Assembly (NCBI GenBank): GCA_964234715.1
Contig: OZ174277.1
Length of the DNA stretch: 64,000 nucleotides
Reading direction: 5' to 3' (one strand)
DNA from: Podarcis melisellensis
Taxonomy: Eukaryota
Of this stretch, positions 6,871-62,426 are shown in pieces. Position 1 is the stretch's first letter, and each line of letters begins with the position of its first letter. Under the pieces are notes generated by a model, which was given only the letters and a program-made list of their open reading frames with translations, was not told the origin of the DNA and did no database searches. The translations under genes and the position numbers were made by a program.

Positions 6871-8897
6871 AGATTTGGTTTATAGAAGTGATGAGGAGTT
6901 AAAAGAAAGTAGAGATGATTAAATGGCTTTAAGTGAACTTTCATTCCAGTGCATGGCAAAGATGTGGAGTTAGTCTCAACACCATGTTGGGAAGAGGTAC
7001 TGGGTCCAATTGTTTATTGTTTGCTCGTTATAATGGCTACTTCATCAATGGCCTTTGCTGTATTCTGTAATGAGTTGTGATGCAGGGCTGATCTTTCTCC
7101 CCTAATGACTCTAGTTCTTTTGGGTTATGAGAAGAGTTGAGGAGGGGATTACTGGAGGCTGATGTGGTGCCCTGCAGCAACCCAACCTCCTGCTTGCCAG
7201 ACAGAATCTATTTTAGGCTGAAGGGGCAAAATGTTCATCTCTTTCCTGTCAACTTCTTCCAGTCCTGCCTGCTAGCTAAAGGAAGGAACTGTAACATGAG
7301 TAAACTGCTTTCCCTAGCAACAGAGAATAGACTTTAACATCAGAGTCATTTTAAAGAGCATCTACTAGTGTCACTATATACCATGCATTTAGCATCAAAT
7401 GTGCTCTAAGGAGAAACATCCATGCCCCGGGGGTTCATAACCAAAGGTAGAAAGGACAAAGATGAAGGGCCACATTTTAAAAATAGCAAGGATCTATGGG
7501 TGAATCAATCATTTAAAAGGCTCTCCTGAAACATTCCTGCAAATCCTCAACTACTAAACTTTTCACATATTTGCTGTCTAGCCTTAAAAAGTAATTGGAG
7601 AGCTATGCTGTTCCAAACATAATATTAGTTGCAAAGTGCAAATGAGATTATATTTTATAGAGAAACTGTGGTCTGAATTTTATGTCCACTTAAACTATCA
7701 TAAATAATATGCAGATGTGCCTCCAACAACAACAAAACATGAATGATGTTTAAATCATTTGTTTTCCAAATAAAAATATACAATGCAGGTGAAACATTAT
7801 GCATGGTCATCTATAATAGAACAAATGAAATATATCCATAAATACTTATTTTTAGCCCTTCATGTTCCTTGTAACATTGCTGACATTTATTTGTGGTGTA
7901 TTTATTTGCAAGTTTAAAGTTCCATTATCCGTAATAACAATTATGGATATACACAGAAGCATGAAACAGACATAAACCCGGAATTAGTGATGAAGATTAT
8001 GTTGTACCATTAAAAATGAGCAGGTTTTTCATCTGTTTCTTAGCTGATGCTATAAGTAGCTGCTAATCTTGATTGTCAAAAGCAGTAAGACTCTGAATGC
8101 GAGTTGCTGGGAATCACAAGTGGGTCAAATGCTGTTGGGCTCCTGGCCTGCTTGTCCCATAGGAATCTATGAGAACCGCATGGAGGACTAGATGGACCTT
8201 CAGAAAGATCCAGCATGGATCTTATGTGTTTTTTAATTGACACTTTACAAAACATTTTTGAATGTGGATGTTGCTTAGATTTGAAAAGATCTATTCAGCA
8301 AGGTTTTACAAGCGGACAAACTAATTTTACACTCCAGTGGATTAAAGATGGAAGGCAAGGGGACTGGTGGATCCCAGCCAGAATGATCAAGTGATCCTCA
8401 GCATAAGTATGACTAAATCAGGGAGAAGGGATGAGTAAAATGTGTGTGTGTGTTCCTATGCAAAGCAAATGTTTTGCTAGTCAGTATTGATAGTACTGAG
8501 CTGTATGGCCCAATGGTCTAACTCAGAATAATGCAGCTTCCTATATGCTGGGGAGCATTCAAGTTCTATGTGCATTTTGAAGCTCTACTTTAAAACGTAG
8601 GCTTCCAATCTTTAGAATAGGTTTATCAGCCTTTACAAGGTCCTTCAGGAGAAAGGAGAAGATACAAATTTAATAAATGATAATAAGTCATTCTCAAAGG
8701 CAACTTCTTTCAAAAGGTAGCTGCAGAAACAACTAACTTTCAACAAGTATTTTGAATTTAAAGAAAGCAATTTTTCATCTACAAAATGTAAATTGTCAAT
8801 TATCAAATATATTTTTCTGGGCATGTGAATAAGACAAGTGCAAGATGGATTCATAAACCATTCAGAGAATCAAATTAGAAAGCACATTTTAACTTAC

Positions 8898-9967: not shown

Positions 9968-11671
9968 CTGTTAAGAGACAGGATTAAAATGTGTTACTTT
10001 CTGAGATTTAAATAAAGAATAAACCATGTCAACAATATTCACATTTATATTACAGAAGGTTATCAAGTTAGTAACTTCTTAATCAACATATTACAATGTT
10101 CTCACTACTTCTGTACTAACCAATATGATCAACATATTAAAATAAAGGCTCAACATTTTTTGCGGTATCTATACAGAGATGAGACATGAGTGGATGAGAA
10201 AATAAACCTGGTAAAAATCATATTGTTGGGCTGGGCTTAACTTTGCAGACTTTCATGCATTCTGTGCCATATCCTCAGGCTATCAGAACATCTTACCTAT
10301 ATTTATCCGCTCCGAGGGTGTGGGGCAGGGTGTGGACATTTGCAATATTTTATTTTGGTCCTTAGGACTTCACACACTATATATTCAGTACTACTTTCGC
10401 AAGAAAATTCCATTTTTACCTGCATGAGTACCATTTTAACCAGCCTTTTCTTCACATCAAGTAACTGAAATCTCTACAATGAGCCATTATAGTCATAATA
10501 AGTTTGTGTGTCCAAAGACAGGCAGCTGAAAGGACCTCAGAGATCAATCCCATGAAATTGCATTACATGTATTATTGCAGCAAAGTGTTTGACAATTAAT
10601 TTGACCACTGCTATGAAGGTTATGTTTAAAACACACACACAAGTACCCTAAAGCTGTTAGTTACTGCTTGCTTTCACTTCGCTATGTTGCTAATATCACA
10701 AGCAAGGAAAATGTCAACATAAATATGTGTAATCACTTCCCTTTTAACTTCAGCCAGTGCAATTTTAAATGTCGGTGTAGATATTCACATCTCTCTTTAA
10801 ACAATCACAGGCTGCCTAAGGCTGGATCCCAATGTTTAACAATTATTGAGCAAGGCAATTAACCTACATTAATTGAATTTCATTATTTCTAGTTGAATGC
10901 ACTATACCTATTTGTAGATAATGATCATGTTTTGTGGAAGGTGAACGTGTTCTGGTAATCTGCATTGTATGTCATGTGCTAGACACAACAGAACACAACA
11001 CACATATAAATGAACACCCAGGAATCACTTATCAGTGTTGACTTCAAAATAGTAGGGCATCAGGTTACAGAAAGGTATTATACTAATAGGACTTAACCAT
11101 CAAACACAGAACAAATTCAGAAGCAATGTGTTAAAGAAGAAGCGCTCCTAAATGGGAGCACCATTAATCAAACAGCAAGACGAGGGCAAACACAGCATTG
11201 TTCATTGAGCAAGACTGTGCACATTTGCCACCTTCGCCTGCTTCAAGTTTTCCCAGCAACCTGCTTGGGGCAGAAGAAAAGTGGAGGCAGCAGTGCTTTG
11301 GGGTAGCCAGTCTTCAACAGCTTGCGATGGAGAAGGTTCAGTTGGAACTGGACACAAACCATTCATTGCTGCTGAGGATCCTCAGTGGGAAGGGGGCCCC
11401 AATTTCTTCTGCTCCAATATAAGTTTCAAGCAGGGTTGAGTAGAGTAAGGAGCAAAGGCAAGCACTTTATGCATGTTCCATCAAACATATGCAAAGTGTT
11501 CAAGTCTTTGTGAATATTCATTCGTAATACTCACAAAGGCTGAAAGCCTTTCAAGACAAGCAGAGAAATCATCCACATCTAAACCAAATTCTATCTTTTT
11601 CCACTAAAAAATAAAGCAGGGACTCAAAATATCTTCAGGATTTCAACACAACACTTCATGGCACCACATAC

Positions 11672-28505: not shown

Positions 28506-28658
28506 CTGCAACCTCCCCTCCTCTTCTGCTTTTTCTGTTCCAGAAAGGCTTCCATCTGTTTCATTGAGCCAGTGCAAATGACTGTCTTGTTCTGTCTTAT
28601 ATTGGGAGAATGAAGGGGAGAGCTCTGCCACCTGTCTCCTTTGTAATGACCTAAGTTC
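28506..28658 (-). CDS. UTRN: UTRN exon (153 nt) homologous to dystrophin exon 40; no counterpart in human utrophin as recalled
   Basis: ttctttgctaatag|GAA CTT AGG...TTG CAG|gtagat; open, phase 0-0; ELRSLQRRQVAELSPSFSQYKTEQDSHLHWLNETDGSLSGTEKAEEEGRLQ vs DMD exon 40 DLRSQRRKKALEISHQWYQYKRQADDLLKCLDDIEKKLASLPEPRDERKIK. Confidence 0.85.
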
Positions 28659-35086: not shown

Positions 35087-35133
<47 letters not shown>

Positions 35134-35637
35134 TTATTATTTATACCCTGCCCATCTGACTGGGTTTCCCCAGCCACTCTGGGTGGCTTCCAACAGAACA
35201 CTAAAATACAATAACCTATTAAACATTAAAAGCTTCCATAAACAGGGCTGCCTTCAGATGTCTTCTAAAAGTTTGGTAGTTGTTTTTTTCTTTGACATCT
35301 GGTAGGAGGGCGTTCCACAGGGCGGGTGCCACTACCGAGAAGGCCCTCTGCCTGGTTCCCTGTAACTTGGCTTCTTGTAGCGAGGGAACCGCCAGAAGGC
35401 CCTCGGCGCTGGACCTCAGTGTCCGGGCAGAACGATGGAGGTGGAGACGCTCCTTCAAGTATACTGGACCGAGGCTGTTTAGGGCTTTAAAGGTCAGCAC
35501 CAACACTTTGAATTGTGCTCGGAAACGTACTGGGAGCCAGTGTAGGTCTTTCAAGACCAGTGTTATATAGTCTAGTGGGAAGAGGGATGTCATTTTGTGG
35601 TTTGTCTCAGGTGCCAAAATGTCTTGGGCAGCCCCTG
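34962..35637. mobile_element. Older TIR element (CAGGGCTGACCC...GGGCAGCCCCTG) hosting the L2 insertion
   Basis: Degenerate inverted termini either side of the L2; superfamily (Harbinger or hAT) uncertain. Confidence 0.45.
35088..35572 (-). mobile_element. Young L2-clade LINE 3' end with (ATT)n tail
   Basis: DYITLVLKDLHWLPVRFRAQFKVLVLTFKALNSLGPVYLKERL...RAFSVVAPALWNAL...FRRHLKAALF; short 3' UTR; (TAA)n at 35088-35133. Confidence 0.9.
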
Positions 35638-38149: not shown

Positions 38150-38818
38150 AAAAGAAAAAAGGGATCCAGAGGGGATCCTGGAAATTACAGGCTGCTTAGC
38201 ACAGGAAAACTGGTGGAAAGTATAGGTAAGGTAAAAGTAAAGGACCCCTGGATGGTTAAGTCCAGTCAAAGGCGACTATGGGGTTGCGGTGCTCATCTCA
38301 CTTTCAGGCCAAGGGAGCTGGCGTTTGTCCACAGACAGCTTTCCGGGTCATGTGGCCAGCATGACTAAACCGCTTCTGACACAAAGGGACACCGTGACAG
38401 AAACCAGAGCGCATGGAAATGCCATTTACCTTCCTGCCGCAGTGGCCCCTATTTATCTACTTGCAGTGGCATGCTTTCAAACTGCTAGGTAGACAGGAGC
38501 TGGGACAGAGCAATGGGAGCTCACCCCATCGTGCGGATTCGAACCGCCAACCTTCCAATCGGCAAACCCAAGAGGCTCAGTGGTTTAGACCACAGTGCCA
38601 CCCGCGTCCCTAGTTTAATGTCCCTGCTTAGCTTAATGTCTGGCACAGGAAAACTGGTGGAAAGTATATTTAAACATAAACTAACCAATCCTATAGAACA
38701 GCAAGCTTGGCTGAAGCAGAGCTGAAGTAGGTTTCTGCAACAGCAAATTTTGTCTCACTAATCTATTAAGAGTTCTTTGAGAGTGTCAACAAAGCATATA
38801 GAAAGAGGTGATCCAGCT
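38150..38818 (+). mobile_element. CR1 LINE RT fragment interrupted by the Sauria SINE
   Basis: DPGNYR..SLMS..GKLVES..., then CLTNL../EFFESVNK across frameshifts. Confidence 0.8.
38225..38610 (-). mobile_element. Sauria-type SINE, full length
   Basis: Minus-strand head GGGACGCGGGTGGCACTGTGGTCTAAACC (A box), GGTTCGAATCC (B box), ACCTTT-like tail. Confidence 0.92.
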
Positions 38819-42071: not shown

Positions 42072-42680
42072 CTGAATTTTGAAGCAAAAGAGTAAGTTGC
42101 ACAGCATGATTACTTTTGAATTTGAACACAGAAAAATATGAATATGAAATAAAATGAGAACTGCAATTTCCTTTCTTGCTGACAAGGGCTGCAATTTAAG
42201 CACTGAATTTTTCAAGATTATGAACCACTCCTAACAGAAGAGCACTTAATTCAGAGATCCTTAACATGGGAAGCCCAAACAAAGATGTACATGATTATGT
42301 TCCCCCATCAGCATCATTCATCTCAACATACGCAAGAATGGCGTGGTTGGAGGCACAGCTTGAACTCTCTAGGGATTTCTATCAATCATTTCCTACTATA
42401 ACATGTTTATAAAGGCTGCCAACATGGATGGCTTTTCCCCAGAGAAAACCCACCGCATACAGCTGAACCGGAACAAATGGCAAATGGGTTTTCCGTGGAT
42501 TGACGTTTGCTCCAAGTCAGCAGTAAAGAGCGGATTTTCCAAAGGAAAGTGGTAGGACAAATAGAAAATCGCTTGGACCTGTGCCTAGTGTCTAAGCAAA
42601 GTGTGGACAAGCCCAAATCCATTAAGGTAAAGGTGATCAATGGATACTGATGATGATAGATGTGTGTACCACCTCCGGTA

Positions 42681-42910
42681 CAGTGGTACCTTGGTTTACG
42701 AACTTAATCCATTCCGGAAGTTCGTTCTTAAACCAAAACTGTTCTTAAACCGAGGTGCACTTTCCCTAATAAGGCCTCCCGCCGCCGGTGCCCTTCCACC
42801 ATTTGGCTTCCATTCTTAGACCGAGGTAAAGTTCACAAACCGAGACACTACTTCTGGTTTTGCAGAGTTCATAAAGCGATCAGGGCTGTTCTTAAAGCGA
42901 TGTACCATTG
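42681..42910. mobile_element. Tigger-like MITE (230 bp)
   Basis: TA|CAGTGGTACCTTGGTTTACGAAC...GTTCTTAAAGCGATGTACCATTG|TA. Confidence 0.82.
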
Positions 42911-57676: not shown

Positions 57677-58098
57677 AAAATGGGTTTTGTGTCAATATAA
57701 TTCCCAGAGCCACAAGGATTTTTTTTCATGTGAATTCATTCAAAAGTCCTGATGTTTCTGTTGACAGGACAACAGGACATAAAATGAGGCTCCTAGGACC
57801 TCCAGCTTGCATGTCCAGCTGCTTCTATTACAACTCACAGGATAGTTGTTCTAGAGAAAAGTGAGGCAAAAGGTTTTCTGAGACAAATCTATTTATGGGT
57901 GGTGAATCCGTTAACTGCTGACCTGATCAAGTGATTTTCTATGCCCCACCCCCAACCAAAAAACATAGCAGCAGTGGGGAAGAAATCCATAAACAGCTCT
58001 GAAATTGCACAATTTTGTACTGGAGAAAGGAAGTACAGAAAAAAGAAACAAGCAGGCCGCAGTTCCCCACTTCTGCCTCTTACCAGCTGGCAAAGCAT

Positions 58099-58476
58099 TG
58101 TTAATGTTCAGAACTTAACTGGTTAAAGTTGTTCTGAGTAGTGCGTCACATTCTGACGTCAGTTTTCGAAGCTGGGAGGAGCTAGCACTTTTCTCTGTGT
58201 CTTTGAGGGAAAAGGACGTGTCTTTGCTATGGCTGAAAGAAGCCCAGGATTGTTTTGATGAATTGCAGCAATAAATAAAAGTTTAATGGACACAAGTGCT
58301 TTCTGAGTTTATCTGAAGCTAGGCGACAGTTTTTGCCGCTGTGTTTACTCTGCAAGGCGTGTCTGGACGGAGCAGAAGTGCCGCAGCTTGTGAGGAAGCG
58401 TACCGGACCGTTGTAAATGGCTAATTGGCGATCGTAAAGCAATTAGCAGGTCACGTCTCAATCAATAATACTGACA
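58099..58476 (+). repeat. 5' LTR (378 bp)
   Basis: TG...CA termini, AATAAA, immediately followed by the PBS; 6 substitutions against the 3' LTR by manual alignment. Confidence 0.93.
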
Positions 58477-58485
58477 GGTTATGGG
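58477..58485 (+). other. Primer-binding site, half-tRNA-iMet type
   Basis: GGTTATGGG abuts the 5' LTR and is complementary to the anticodon arm of initiator tRNA-Met, as in Drosophila copia. Confidence 0.8.
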
Positions 58486-58699
58486 TGACGTCATAAATCG
58501 CTCGTAAAGCTGTCGCTGGAGCTGCCGGAATGCTTTGAAGTCTGCGTTCTGAGGCAGAGAAGCTGGCCGGAGGCAAGAGAGTTGCTGGGAGCTGGGAGCT
58601 GAGCTGAGAGCAGCTGGAAAATTGTTTCTCCACGGACGGGTGAGCTGGAAAAGCTGATACGTGAGTAAGCTTGGGGCACCCTTGGGAGAACGGAAGAGA

Positions 58700-59707
58700 A
58701 TGGCAGCCAGCCAGGTCCTTGAGGACATCCCCTTGGAAAAGCTAACTTTAACAAGTTGGCCAACCTGGTCAAGAAGAGTAAGGGGTTGGTTTCTGGTCAC
58801 AGGGCTTTGGGAAGTAAGCCAGAGGGAGCCAGTAACCCCTACGCAAGACGTTGCAGGCTTTGAGGCTGCGTTGGCTGAAGATAGCCAGCAGAGAATGCAA
58901 AGAGAGCTTGATATGCTGAAGGCATGCGTACATGCATCGCTGAAACCCCATCTGGAGGGCGTAAAGTCAGCAAGGGCTGCCTGGGAGGTGCTGAGAAGTT
59001 TGTGTGAAACTTCAGCAGGAGGCCAGAGCCCTGGAGAAGCTGGTGAAGCAGCTCTGTTTCCCGATGAATCAGCCTCAAGGAGCGCTGTTGAGCAGGTTGG
59101 GGGGGCGAAGAATTCCAAAGGCAAGTTTAAAGAGTTTTCCTCTGAGAGTTCTGGAGTGGACGGCCGTTTCAGAGGGGGCGGGGCTGGCATGAGGCGCTTT
59201 TCCAGAAGAAGGAGGGCCAGGCCAGCAGAAAGGAGCCCCGGGCAGTGTTTTTCCACTGGAGCTGAACATCTGCGTCGCAATTGCCCCCACCGGAGCAGAG
59301 AGCCGAAGCAGGATGTTGCCAAGGTCACTTCCCATGGGAACCAGCCGGGTTTCCATGGCAACCAGCCTGGAAAGGCAGGCAGGCGTAGAGCTGAACGTGG
59401 CAAACAAGAGAAGGCTTATCAACTGACTGCCAGTATGGCTTTGTTTGAGAACAGCTGTGTGAGAAACTCAGAGCTTTGCTTTGTGATTGACTCAGCAGCT
59501 AATCGCAACATGGTTCCAGAGACCCCTGCAGTTAAGATGTGGAATTGCAAAGCAGTTCCAGCTGGACAAACTGTTTTATTTGCAAATGGACAAAAAGGAA
59601 ATGTATCTAACTTTGCTACAATATTCCTTTCTGTTTTGCAGGAGGAGGTCGAAGTGTGCACCATCCCAGAGATCCTCACTGTCTTTTGTCTGTGCCTTAT
59701 TTGTTAA
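58700..59707 (+). CDS. copia Gag plus N-terminal protease (degenerate; frame lost near 59675)
   Basis: ATG at 58700; copia Gag N-terminus (LEKLTLTSWPTW...GLWEV...SARAAWEVL); degenerate zinc knuckle CFSTGAEHLRRNC; protease motif FVIDSAANRNM and VLFANG. Confidence 0.85.
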   Translation: MAASQVLEDIPLEKLTLTSWPTWSRRVRGWFLVTGLWEVSQREPVTPTQDVAGFEAALAEDSQQRMQRELDMLKACVHASLKPHLEGVKSARAAWEVLRSLCETSAGGQSPGEAGEAALFPDESASRSAVEQVGGAKNSKGKFKEFSSESSGVDGRFRGGGAGMRRFSRRRRARPAERSPGQCFSTGAEHLRRNCPHRSREPKQDVAKVTSHGNQPGFHGNQPGKAGRRRAERGKQEKAYQLTASMALFENSCVRNSELCFVIDSAANRNMVPETPAVKMWNCKAVPAGQTVLFANGQKGNVSNFATIFLSVLQEEVEVCTIPEILTVFCLCLIC

Positions 59708-61299
59708 AAAAGGGGTTTAAGGTTTGTTTTGAAAATGCTGTCTGCACAATCTCCAAAGGAGAGAGGATACTTGCCAAGATTAAGAAGGGGCAGAATGATC
59801 TTTTCATTCTTAAAACGTCTCTTGGGGGTGAGGGGAAGGTTGAGAAAGCACAAGCCCTGCGTGCTACAATTCCCGCTCATGTTACATGTGCTTGTGTATG
59901 GCACCAGAGGACAATTCATGGTTCTCTAGAAGAACTGCAGGTACTACCTGAGGTTGCCAAAGGGTGTAAGATTAAAGATTGTGGAAGTGCCATAAATTGT
60001 GACACTTGCAGACAGGCAAAGATAAGAGGGTGCAGTTACCCAAAGGTGGAGAGGGTAACCACTAAACCTTTTGATCTTGTCCACATAGATCTGTTCGGTC
60101 CCATAGGTGAACCTAGTCTGGGAGGGGCCAAGTTTCTGCTAACGATACAGGACAGTTTTTCGCAGAACACCTGGACTCACGGTCTCAAATCCAGGGAGGA
60201 CGCAGCACAGCTGATTAAAAGCTGGATTGAAGCGGTGGAACTAAGGTTCTCCACCAGAGTGCAAGCGGTCACCAGTGACAGACACGCTACGTTTACTGGT
60301 TCTGCTTTGCAGAGGTTCTTTCACAAGAAAGGGATACATCACACAGTTACTTCTCCCCAGCAGAGGGGGGTGGCAGAGCTTAGGAGTGAAGCTCTGGTTA
60401 AGGCTGCACAGGTGATGCTGACAGATGCTGGATTACCTCCAAAGTTTTGGTTGGAGGCGGTCAGTTATGTGTGGAATCGTACCTACAATTCACTGGTAGG
60501 TGACACACCTTACTTCATGTTGCATGGCAGGAAACCCCAGATTCACTTTCTGCGCACGTTTGGATCACCTGCATCTGTGCCGGTGCCTGAGGCTTTGCCA
60601 GGGCCAGATGGATCCAAGTTCCAGAAAATGATCTTCTGTGGGTATGAGCCAGCAGCTTGCGCATGGAGATTTGCATACCCATCAGGTGATCAGAATAAAC
60701 TGCTAATCAGTAAACACGCTGAGTTCTTTGAGCAGGATGAAAGGCCAAAGATTCCTGCACAGCGTGATGTTCTTTCAGAATGTCTTTCTGATGCAGAACA
60801 GGAAGGTTCAGATGAGGAGGAAGGAGAGGCTGAGTCTGCTGACGACGACCAGGTCACTGACCAGGGTCAAGAGCAGGATGGGGCATCTCCACAAGTTGTT
60901 AAAAGAGAGCCCAAGAGTGAGCCTAGTTCCCCTGTGAGTGTAATGGAGAGGATTCGAAGACGCTTTAAGTCAGAGGGGGAATCCCATGATGCAGAGGACA
61001 CACCTGCTGACCACAGTGAGTCAGAGGAAACCCCTGAGTTTGTGCCCAGGCGATCTAGTCGCACAACGAAGGGTATTCCACCTGAGAGGTACCAGGCCAC
61101 AGGTGCGTGGGTAAGTTTCGCACAGTGCGATTCTGAGAGTTGTGAGGTTGTTCCACAGTTGTCTAACAGGAACGCCGGGAGAGGGCGCAAGGCATTGGGG
61201 AAGGGATTGATCTCACAGAGTTTTGCTGAGGATGTTCCACAGGTCTTGTCAAAACGCGACGCAAGAGGGGGTGTTAATGTTCAGAACTTAACTGGTTAA
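59656..61299 (+). CDS. copia Pol remnant: protease C-terminal half, HHCC pre-integrase, rve integrase, SH3-like domain and linker; reads into the 3' LTR
   Basis: LLSVPYL..KGFKVCF; WHQRTIH...CDTC; PFDLVHIDLFGP; TSD; GVAE; GLPPKFWLEAV; LRTFGS; IFCGY; RRSSRTTKGIPPERY; no YVDD or RNase H motif. Confidence 0.92.
   Translation: MHHPRDPHCLLSVPYLLKKGFKVCFENAVCTISKGERILAKIKKGQNDLFILKTSLGGEGKVEKAQALRATIPAHVTCACVWHQRTIHGSLEELQVLPEVAKGCKIKDCGSAINCDTCRQAKIRGCSYPKVERVTTKPFDLVHIDLFGPIGEPSLGGAKFLLTIQDSFSQNTWTHGLKSREDAAQLIKSWIEAVELRFSTRVQAVTSDRHATFTGSALQRFFHKKGIHHTVTSPQQRGVAELRSEALVKAAQVMLTDAGLPPKFWLEAVSYVWNRTYNSLVGDTPYFMLHGRKPQIHFLRTFGSPASVPVPEALPGPDGSKFQKMIFCGYEPAACAWRFAYPSGDQNKLLISKHAEFFEQDERPKIPAQRDVLSECLSDAEQEGSDEEEGEAESADDDQVTDQGQEQDGASPQVVKREPKSEPSSPVSVMERIRRRFKSEGESHDAEDTPADHSESEETPEFVPRRSSRTTKGIPPERYQATGAWVSFAQCDSESCEVVPQLSNRNAGRGRKALGKGLISQSFAEDVPQVLSKRDARGGVNVQNLTG
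61263..61271 (+). other. Polypurine tract
   Basis: AAGAGGGGG directly before the 3' LTR TG. Confidence 0.85.
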
Positions 61300-61639
61300 A
61301 GTTGTTCTGAGTAGTGCGTCACATTCTGATGTCAGTTTTCGAAGCTGGGAGGAGCTAGCACTTTTCTCTGTGTCTTTGAGGGGAAAGGACGTGTCTTTGC
61401 TATGGCTGAAAGAAGCCCAGGATTGTTTTGATGAATTGCAGCAATAAATAACTGTTTAATGGACACAAGTGCTTTCTGAGTTTATCTGAAGCTAGGCGAC
61501 AGTTTTTGCCGTTGTGTTTACTCTGCAAGGCGTGACTGGACGGAGCAGAAGTGCCGCAGCTTGTGAGGAAGCGTACCGGACCGTTGTAAATGGCTAATTG
61601 GCGATCGTAAAGCAATTAGCAGGTCACGTCTCAATCAAA
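61272..61639 (+). repeat. 3' LTR (368 bp, terminal 10-12 nt missing)
   Basis: Follows the PPT; ~98% identical to the 5' LTR but lacks the ...TAATACTGAC end. Confidence 0.93.
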
Positions 61640-62426
61640 AGCATGGCAAAAAAGAAATTGGCCCTCATCCCTCTCCTCCTGCAGGAAGGCATGATTTGCA
61701 GCCCTAATTCCCTACCATTGCATCCAACTGGCCAGCAATACATATCGAAGGGTGGGGTGAGCAAAAAGGATCAAACCTCCTTCTTTAGGCAGATACACAT
61801 GATTTGTCACCCAGGGAATGGGTCACAATCCATCAAGTTTGAAAACTTTGGTGTCAGGAAGGTATTTCAGCTGGCTACCCATGTGGGTCTCCCTGAGTAG
61901 CTAATATGGGCGGAGTGGGGCATTAGAACCATTTCTTCCACATTGATCTTTGTAAATGCATGGATGCGATGCTATTTTAGGAAAGCTGTGTCCAGTTTTG
62001 TGGAACCTATTGTTGTCTAGTTCTTTCTTTCCTTCCCATATGCTCTGCAAGGACATGGGAGGTCTGATTGACTGCTAGGCAAAACAGCTTAGCTAACACT
62101 TGCTATTTTGCCTGAAACTATAGAAAAGGAAGCATGCATATTTTGAATGCATCACTCACATTAGGCCTGTGTTTTTCGTACATCCACAACTATTTATACA
62201 ACACAACACATGTTGCTTGTCACACCTATCTTACTGAGCAGCAGTTTTCACATATAAGCCTGTTAAAACTGTGGGAAAAGTCTAATTCTTCTCCGCACCC
62301 ACACCCCAATGGTACACACCAATGTTAGTCGGCTTAATTTAAAATGCAATGGCATAAAAAAGCCAAGCTGACTATAGACAGCTGCGTCTGAGTTTAAATT
62401 TGCTGAAGTGAAAAAAGGGAACATAC

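Follow-up and report, generated by a model that had tools for sequence, protein, structure and literature searches.

Plants hold long-lived lineages of retrotransposons that have long terminal repeats (LTRs) and are without reverse transcriptase (RT), for example TR-GAG, RLG_Quinta with its helper RLG_Cereba, and RLG_Sabrina/WHAM with its helper RLG_Wilma, and such semi-autonomous elements keep an open frame for a structural protein, share the primer-binding site (PBS) and some LTR features with the helper, and exchange gag by recombination (PMC11302176, PMC9744471, PMC13570524). These are Ty3/gypsy or plant elements that encode Gag only (or Gag and protease, PR) and have lost integrase (IN), whereas the element described here is a copia element of a vertebrate and has kept IN. 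It is a Ty1/copia-type LTR element of 3.54 kb, with its ends and interior present, at 58099-61639 (+) of a 64,000-nucleotide stretch of Podarcis melisellensis DNA (contig OZ174277.1), and this whole stretch is referred to as the window. A vertebrate LTR subfamily with one shared internal deletion is also known, the mouse intracisternal A-particle subfamily I-delta-1, which still codes for a fusion protein and which full-length elements mobilise in trans. Unlike the lizard element, I-delta-1 belongs to the betaretrovirus-like endogenous retroviruses, has a different deletion and is a much younger subfamily, and we know of no long-term selection on a retained integrase in it. BARE-2 of barley, whose pol is kept and whose Gag is defective, is the reverse of the window element, in which pol is without RT and RNase H and Gag and IN are kept. 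It is a defective copia lineage that spreads by parasitising the closely related autonomous copia element BARE-1 (BARE-2 is cited in PMC13570524). The window element does not fall into the TR-GAG class, which has a Gag frame only and no pol enzymes, because integrase and a protease-like domain are kept, although the logic of a helper-dependent coding parasite is alike; nor does it fall into the LARD and TRIM classes, whose interior is non-coding, because it has long Gag-PR and IN frames with an omega (dN/dS, the ratio of nonsynonymous to synonymous substitution rates) of 0.24. The non-autonomous LTR retrotransposons of plants, which are well described, are non-coding or have Gag only. In our literature searches there was no description of a lineage without RT and RNase H that keeps Gag-PR-IN under purifying selection, nor of a vertebrate case. 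What differs from the plant parasites is the gene content (Gag, an altered PR and IN kept, RT and RNase H lost), the occurrence of copia in an amniote, and the constraint on the retained integrase.

The nearest relatives with a complete pol are the autonomous copia elements of lacertid lizards, here represented by polyprotein P0002 of P. lilfordi, which is annotated as 'Pol polyprotein from transposon TNT 1-94' and whose locus (OX395127.1) is called L002. A second autonomous element is called L003. The autonomous elements of lacertids are in the same clade of the integrase tree as the window element and have the same Gag-PR-IN order, the same linker ...RRSxRxTKGxPPERY, the PBS GGTTATGG, a polypurine tract (PPT) that is a purine run, an LTR start TGT... 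and a 5-bp target-site duplication (TSD). They differ in that they have RVT_2 and the rest of pol and a protease motif that reads DSGA; their integrase is about 46% identical to that of the window element and their LTR bodies and 3' LTR termini are unrelated to those of the RT-less element.

With a probability of about 0.7, we consider the window element to be an inactive copy of an RT-less ('semi-autonomous') lineage of lizard Ty1/copia elements that would depend on a helper for RT; helper dependence and trans-complementation are both proposed here from sequence. The two open reading frames (ORFs) of the window element were always analysed apart, and in neither ORF1 nor ORF2 was there a Pfam match to RVT_2 or to an RNase H family, which bears out the claim of an earlier note on this DNA that RT and RNase H are absent. 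When autonomous polyproteins were used as tblastn queries, the alignment ended at residue 942 and RT was not found in the element. The short remnant that the note had likened to the start of RT is there as well, as about 45 residues past RRSSRTTKGIPPERY match residues ~900-942 of P0002, immediately upstream of RVT_2, which starts at residue 948. Past this remnant the frame has a short stretch without a match and goes on across the PPT; the ORF2 stop codon sits inside the 3' LTR. The order of the domains, a protease-like domain, rve and SH3_retrovirus, and the N-terminal remnant of RT, is that of Ty1/copia, in which IN is upstream of RT, and for want of RVT_2 and RNase H the element is a derivative of Ty1/copia (Pseudoviridae) and not a complete member.

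The evidence that carries this reading comes from a relative in another species. In a word-index protein search the sole match to the integrase frame was P0001, an 'uncharacterized protein' of P. muralis, whose tail is the same as that of the window copy, residue for residue, up to the PPT. At its locus (OZ076959.1, here L001) there is an element with LTRs of 426 bp that are 100% identical, a TSD ACAGT and one uninterrupted Gag-PR-IN frame of 954 codons without RVT_2, and this frame contains Retrotran_gag_2 (1e-30), a zf-CCHC knuckle, a protease-like domain with DSAA, an integrase and the same tail. The window copy and L001 are 78.8% identical over 2177 nt and are collinear from the junction through the PPT to 80 nt into the LTR, and the rest of the LTR bodies cannot be aligned. 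Both are antisense in an intron. The two are independent insertions, because the host gene, the TSD and the LTRs all differ between them, and because they share the junction while each has its own TSD, the deletion is older than both insertions and transposition took place after it in both lineages. The window copy and L001 are thus best read as two diverged subfamilies that inherited one deletion. That a non-autonomous family had amplified without RT while keeping the gag and IN frames was the proposal of the earlier note, and it finds support in the junction of L001, in the separate TSDs and in an omega of 0.24. The note had also named the opposite case, in which an ordinary copia copy had suffered a one-off internal deletion after insertion or had collapsed in the assembly. 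Internal deletions of LTR elements are common, and a single copy in one window cannot alone exclude such an event, but another genome, assembled independently, has the identical junction in an element whose LTRs and TSD are different; L001 is not an orthologous insertion, given its different TSD, host gene and LTRs; and there is no N anywhere in the window, and neither copy shows a disturbance of the frame at the junction. These data contradict a one-off deletion or a collapse, which we regard as highly improbable.

If the deletion is older than both insertions, every ancestor between the two copies was already without RT, and for this reason a pairwise dN/dS between them measures the constraint on RT-less elements. 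The analysis that the earlier note had called for was run on this one pair, the window copy against L001, with Nei-Gojobori (NG86) counts, bootstrap 95% intervals and a Fisher test. In the integrase frame (533 codons) dS was 0.50 and dN was 0.12, which gives an omega of 0.237 (bootstrap 95% 0.18-0.31; Fisher p 1e-26). For the IN core and the SH3 domain omega was 0.26 at a dS of about 0.5, from the zinc knuckle to the protease it was 0.29, and in the RT remnant, which is weakly constrained, it was 0.34 (0.14-0.83). These values, from a single pair, indicate that purifying selection on Gag-PR-IN continued after the loss of RT. The integrase is constrained, and 'protein decay', as the note had it, is the wrong term for it.

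In the integrase tree, which is a quick tree, the window copy and L001 form a pair with 100% support on a stem of 0.91 changes per site, whereas the neighbouring terminal branches are 0.44-0.49 changes per site, and the pair is nested in a well-supported clade of the RT-bearing relatives P0002, P0007 and P0003. All three of these autonomous relatives have DSGA where both RT-less copies have DSAA. An exhaustive search of 1.84 billion representative proteins gave 32,175 copia-like matches, among which only P0001 was more than 50% identical. The RT-less pair would accordingly appear to be a lineage apart, with a phase of fast change followed by constraint. A different explanation is that both copies are recurrent by-products of an unsampled RT-bearing master with the same PR-IN and LTRs, made by retrotransposition of a spliced RNA or by a repeated template jump, in which case selection acts on the master. 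The clade does have a conserved donor-like GT[GA]AGTA in its 5' untranslated region (UTR), L003 has an acceptor-like tract before the PPT, and the protein collections sample the frames of lizard transposable elements (TEs) only sporadically, so that a missing master is weak evidence. The conserved donor sits upstream of gag, however, and not at the junction, and in the autonomous relative there is no GT at the position homologous to the junction. Furthermore, the two RT-less copies share both the junction and DSAA at a dS of 0.5, whereas the RT-bearing relatives have DSGA and integrases that are 43-46% identical, and a master would require a working protease. An origin from such a master is, in our judgement, quite unlikely, and the data are better accounted for by an RT-less lineage that transposed in its own right with borrowed RT.

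A link to a helper is suggested by the gag of L001. Residues 1-210 of the L001 Gag are about 95% identical in protein and 91% identical in nucleotides to P0002/L002, and in the capsid domain dS between L001 and P0002 is 0.42, dN is 0.037 and omega is 0.087. From residue 211 onwards the identity drops abruptly to 25-45% and no nucleotide similarity is left. By this pattern L001 is a recombinant in which an RT-less backbone took up, or shares, the Gag of an autonomous lineage. The gag swap points to a helper, and it would be expected if the two RNAs go into particles together and if this entry requires a Gag that matches. L002 and L003 both have the PBS of the RT-less elements, the purine-run PPT, the TGT... 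LTR start and GT[GA]AGTA in the 5' UTR, whereas their 3' LTR termini are unlike the ...TACTG(C)ACA of the RT-less pair and the LTR bodies differ too. Partner pairs are recognised by the same PBS, conserved LTR termini, an overlapping period of activity and promoter similarity (PMC9744471). With respect to these features L002 and L003 have the PBS in common and a similar 5' LTR start with the RT-less elements and differ in the 3' termini and LTR bodies. Differing 3' LTR termini would give a parasite a reason to keep its own integrase.

Several observations weigh against the proposed RT-less lineage. Only one relative that shares the junction was retrieved, and it is from another genome (the public P. 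muralis genome), so that the claim of a family rests on one cross-genome relative. No second copy with the LTR of the window element was found in the window, the protein collections or a metagenome scan: outside the element itself, BLAST with it as query gave no other copy and no solo LTR in the window, a protein-index search with the Gag-PR frame of the window copy gave no relative, a junction 21-mer, conserved across the RT remnant, had no match in JGI metagenome contigs, and a word-index search with the 954-aa frame of L001 gave no relatives other than autonomous or partial ones. Among the retrieved autonomous elements (L002, L003) there is no helper whose LTR termini match, and the retrieved autonomous integrases are only 43-46% identical to the RT-less ones, with different 3' LTR ends. 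The integrase is altered near the catalytic E, with a deletion of PY and changes of QQNG to QQ[RG]G and of AER to AEL, and given these altered conserved positions and the long stem branch its predicted activity is not assured. These changes to the integrase, the long stem branch, the altered protease motif and the absence of the capsid core from the Gag of the window copy would also fit a passive, LARD-like mobilisation, in which Gag-PR-IN is not used for the transposition of the element itself and the constraint reflects another role (dominant-negative or helper-modulating) or recent descent through repeated recombination with autonomous elements, and the gag swap does show that modules are exchanged with autonomous elements. 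Against passive mobilisation, omega is 0.24-0.29 at a dS of 0.5, not only in PR and IN but also in the acidic linker and the tail; the zinc-finger and D, D, E residues of the integrase are all kept; and the RT-less elements and the autonomous relatives have unlike 3' LTR termini, as would fit if the integrase had to match them. We consider passive mobilisation unlikely.

On the preferred reading, that of an RT-less lineage served by a helper, the course of events was as follows. An ancestor lost the whole segment that begins with the RT domain and ends shortly before the PPT, and it kept its LTRs, its half-tRNA(iMet) PBS, its PPT and one Gag-PR-IN frame. The lineage then kept transposing and split into subfamilies, with Gag-PR-IN under purifying selection. 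Because the element is without RT or RNase H, reverse transcription must be borrowed, and its RNA would be reverse-transcribed by the enzymes of an autonomous copia element from the same clade, probably inside mixed virus-like particles. The DSAA motif suggests that cleavage of the polyprotein may be outsourced too. Its own integrase, and Gag where it is intact, would probably serve its own RNA and its distinctive LTR ends, and such a use would account for their conservation. The insertion of the window copy, antisense in an intron, probably dates back a few million years. A more far-reaching version, to which we give somewhat less than an even chance, is that of a long-lived 'satellite' lineage that outsources only reverse transcription and probably proteolysis, that has its own capsid and integrase under selection, and into which the current Gag domain of the helper is swapped repeatedly for co-assembly. 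If true, this would be a vertebrate parasite-helper system of LTR elements with modular co-evolution. If the main reading of an RT-less lineage holds, two sets of retroelement functions come apart: an integrase that fits the element's LTR ends, and a Gag that fits either its RNA or the helper particle, would be needed in cis, and polymerase and protease would be borrowable. Such a lineage would also offer a natural system for helper-parasite co-evolution and gag exchange in an amniote with apparently recent copia activity. There is also a consequence for annotation: such frames are labelled 'uncharacterized protein' by annotators (P. muralis LOC144327940), which leads to inflated gene sets.

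Table 1. Features of the RT-less copia element and its borders in the window.
Feature	Position	Strand	Basis or remark
TSD, left copy, AGCAT	58094-58098	+	identical 5-mer at 61640-61644
5' LTR, 378 bp, TG...CA ends	58099-58476	+	aligned to 61272-61639, 6 substitutions
PBS GGTTATGGG	58477-58485	+	complementary to anticodon loop of initiator tRNA-Met; copia-type half-tRNA primer
Splice-donor-like heptamer GTGAGTA, 5' UTR	58661-58667	+	GT[GA]AGTA invariant here in relatives
Shortened Gag and protease-like frame	58700-59707	+	ORF1 58661-59707, ATG at 58700
gag-like N-terminus	58700 to ~59011	+	28% identity to autonomous Gag N-termini, E 7e-10
Unmatched mid-Gag segment	~59012-59245	+	no homology in any frame
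Defective zinc knuckle	59246-59284	+	second Cys missing
DSAA replacing protease DSG	59489-59500	+	alignment with relatives
Integrase frame (ORF2)	59656-61299	+	rve 4.8e-11, SH3_retrovirus 5.3e-10 (Pfam)
HHCC zinc finger	59902-60009	+	invariant alignment columns
D, D, E residues	within 60082-60099, 60271-60288, 60370-60387	+	invariant alignment columns
SH3-like domain, acidic linker after it	start ~60544	+	SH3_retrovirus match
RRSSRTTKGIPPERY	61048-61092	+	3' of acidic linker
RT N-terminal remnant (to ~61215), deletion junction, short lead to PPT	61093-61262	+	aligned to P0002 ~900-942; collinear with L001
PPT AAGAGGGGG	61263-61271	+	adjoins 3' LTR; homologous purine runs in L001, L003
3' LTR, 368 bp	61272-61639	+	without the 10 bp matching 58466-58475
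TSD, right copy, AGCAT	61640-61644	+	same 5-mer as 58094-58098

The coding part of the window copy (Table 1) is less complete than that of L001. In its Gag about 100 N-terminal residues are weakly gag-like and the next ~85 residues have no match in any frame, there is no capsid core, ORF1 has no match to a Pfam gag family, and frameshifted remnants of the missing core were not found in any frame. The shortening of Gag upstream of the zinc knuckle, which had been noticed earlier from the sequence, is thereby upheld, and the knuckle itself is damaged as well. The protease region departs from the retropepsin motif D-[ST]-G, since both the window copy and L001 read DSAA. In the integrase the H-H-C-C and the D, D, E residues are all present, and ORF2 also has a weak match to gag_pre-integrs in Pfam. 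The sole frame break of the window copy is the shift between Gag-PR and IN at ~59675-59685. This break, the defective knuckle and the 10 bp missing from the 3' LTR end make the window copy one that is now inactive.

The outline of the element was taken from its repeats. A repeat search of the window picked up a 300-nt direct repeat with 98% identity, and in a pairwise alignment 58099-58465 and 61272-61638 matched over 367 ungapped columns with exactly 6 substitutions (1.6%), the number that the earlier note had counted. That note had credited the element with all cis signals, and the PBS, the PPT and the TSD are indeed present, but it had overlooked that the 10 bp at 58466-58475 of the 5' LTR are missing from the end of the 3' LTR, and the end of the 5' LTR has been moved to 58476. 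This end was placed by comparison with L001, L002 and L003; it is 58476 and not 58465 because the LTRs of these three relatives abut the PBS, and in each of the four related elements the 5' LTR is followed directly by the conserved GGTTATGG. A shorter LTR flanked by a 7-bp TSD was considered and rejected, since all three relatives show 5-bp TSDs and LTRs that abut the PBS, and a 5-bp TSD with a 10-bp gap in the 3' LTR was adopted instead. The ends TG...CA, the 5-bp TSD and the PBS and PPT adjoining the LTRs are those of Ty1/copia. Drosophila copia primes from an internal half-tRNA(iMet) fragment, and its PBS pairs with the anticodon-loop region and not with the 3' end of the tRNA. The PBS of the window element is of this Drosophila copia-like type, with a complementarity to initiator tRNA-Met of only 8-9 nt, and its use as a primer site is a prediction. 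In its reverse complement the tRNAMet(i) printed in PMC1797187 reads ...ctctgggttatgggcccagcac... and contains GGGTTATGGGCCC. ARAGORN found no tRNA gene in the loci fetched for the relatives.

At ordinary vertebrate substitution rates a divergence of 1.6% between the LTRs corresponds to a few million years. 'Young', as the element had been called, is thus right in that the divergence is low, and it is a relative term for an insertion of this age. Over that time about 21 coding substitutions and about 0.9 new stop codons are expected in the window copy, and what is seen is no stop and one frame break, so that at insertion the copy was probably open throughout. Its source element would then already have had DSAA and the shortened Gag. 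For the 85 unmatched gag codons, the chance of staying open at random is about 0.01. The change from DSG to DSA and the loss of RT predate the insertion, the shortening of Gag probably does so too, and the single frame break is compatible with decay after insertion. The view that the proteins had decayed long before the insertion therefore holds for DSAA, for the loss of RT and probably for Gag; it does not hold for the integrase, which is constrained, and the frame break may be later. As to the setting, the minus strand has at 28506-28658 a frame that resembles an exon and is bounded by AG/GT, which agrees with the earlier placement of the insertion within a gene, and because this frame is on the minus strand the element is antisense in the intron. 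The G+C content of the element is 0.49 compared to about 0.40 around it. Elsewhere in the window, repeats at 38228-38615, 35095-35201 and 42678-42869 are SINE-like and have 75-92% identity to Podarcis loci.

The public annotation of the L001 locus models only a 315-aa 'uncharacterized protein LOC144327940' at 10001-10948, starting from an internal Met of the 954-codon frame, so that with LOC144327940 a TE frame has been entered as a gene of the host. In L002 the autonomous copy is 3'-truncated at 8060-8105, where the end of RNase H is joined to the last ~27 nt of the LTR, followed by the TSD GGGCG; because RNase H is joined directly to the LTR, the annotated 1376-aa P0002 ends in LTR-derived residues.

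There are also short motifs in the LTRs and the 5' UTR. AATAAA occurs within the 5' LTR, with two TGACGTCA motifs nearby. These are perfect palindromes resembling the cAMP response element, one at 58163-58170 (U3) and one at 58487-58494, immediately past the PBS; the U3 motif is repeated in the 3' LTR as TGATGTCA, and the LTR of L001 from Podarcis has TGACGTCA at the homologous place in U3. In all four elements U5 has a sense-strand segment that resembles the 5' half of initiator tRNA-Met, at ~58378-58410 in the window, ~7725-7760 in L001, ~3770-3795 in L002 and ~1663-1680 in L003. In L003 the 18-nt GTGGCGCAGCGGAAGCGT is an exact match to the tRNA sequence in PMC1797187 and in the other three elements the segment is degenerate. 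It lies about 60-90 nt upstream of the PBS, which pairs with the anticodon loop of the same tRNA. All four related copia elements, RT-less and autonomous, have the invariant heptamer GT[GA]AGTA upstream of the gag ATG, at a distance of about 30-70 nt: at 58661-58667 in the window, ~8055-8065 in L001, ~3968-3976 in L002 and ~1843-1850 in L003. A splice origin of the deletion junction was considered and rejected, as the homologous site of the autonomous relative has no donor. In L003 an acceptor-like pyrimidine tract and CAG are found just 5' of the PPT. With its conserved donor-like heptamer in the 5' UTR, this copia clade may make spliced subgenomic RNAs.

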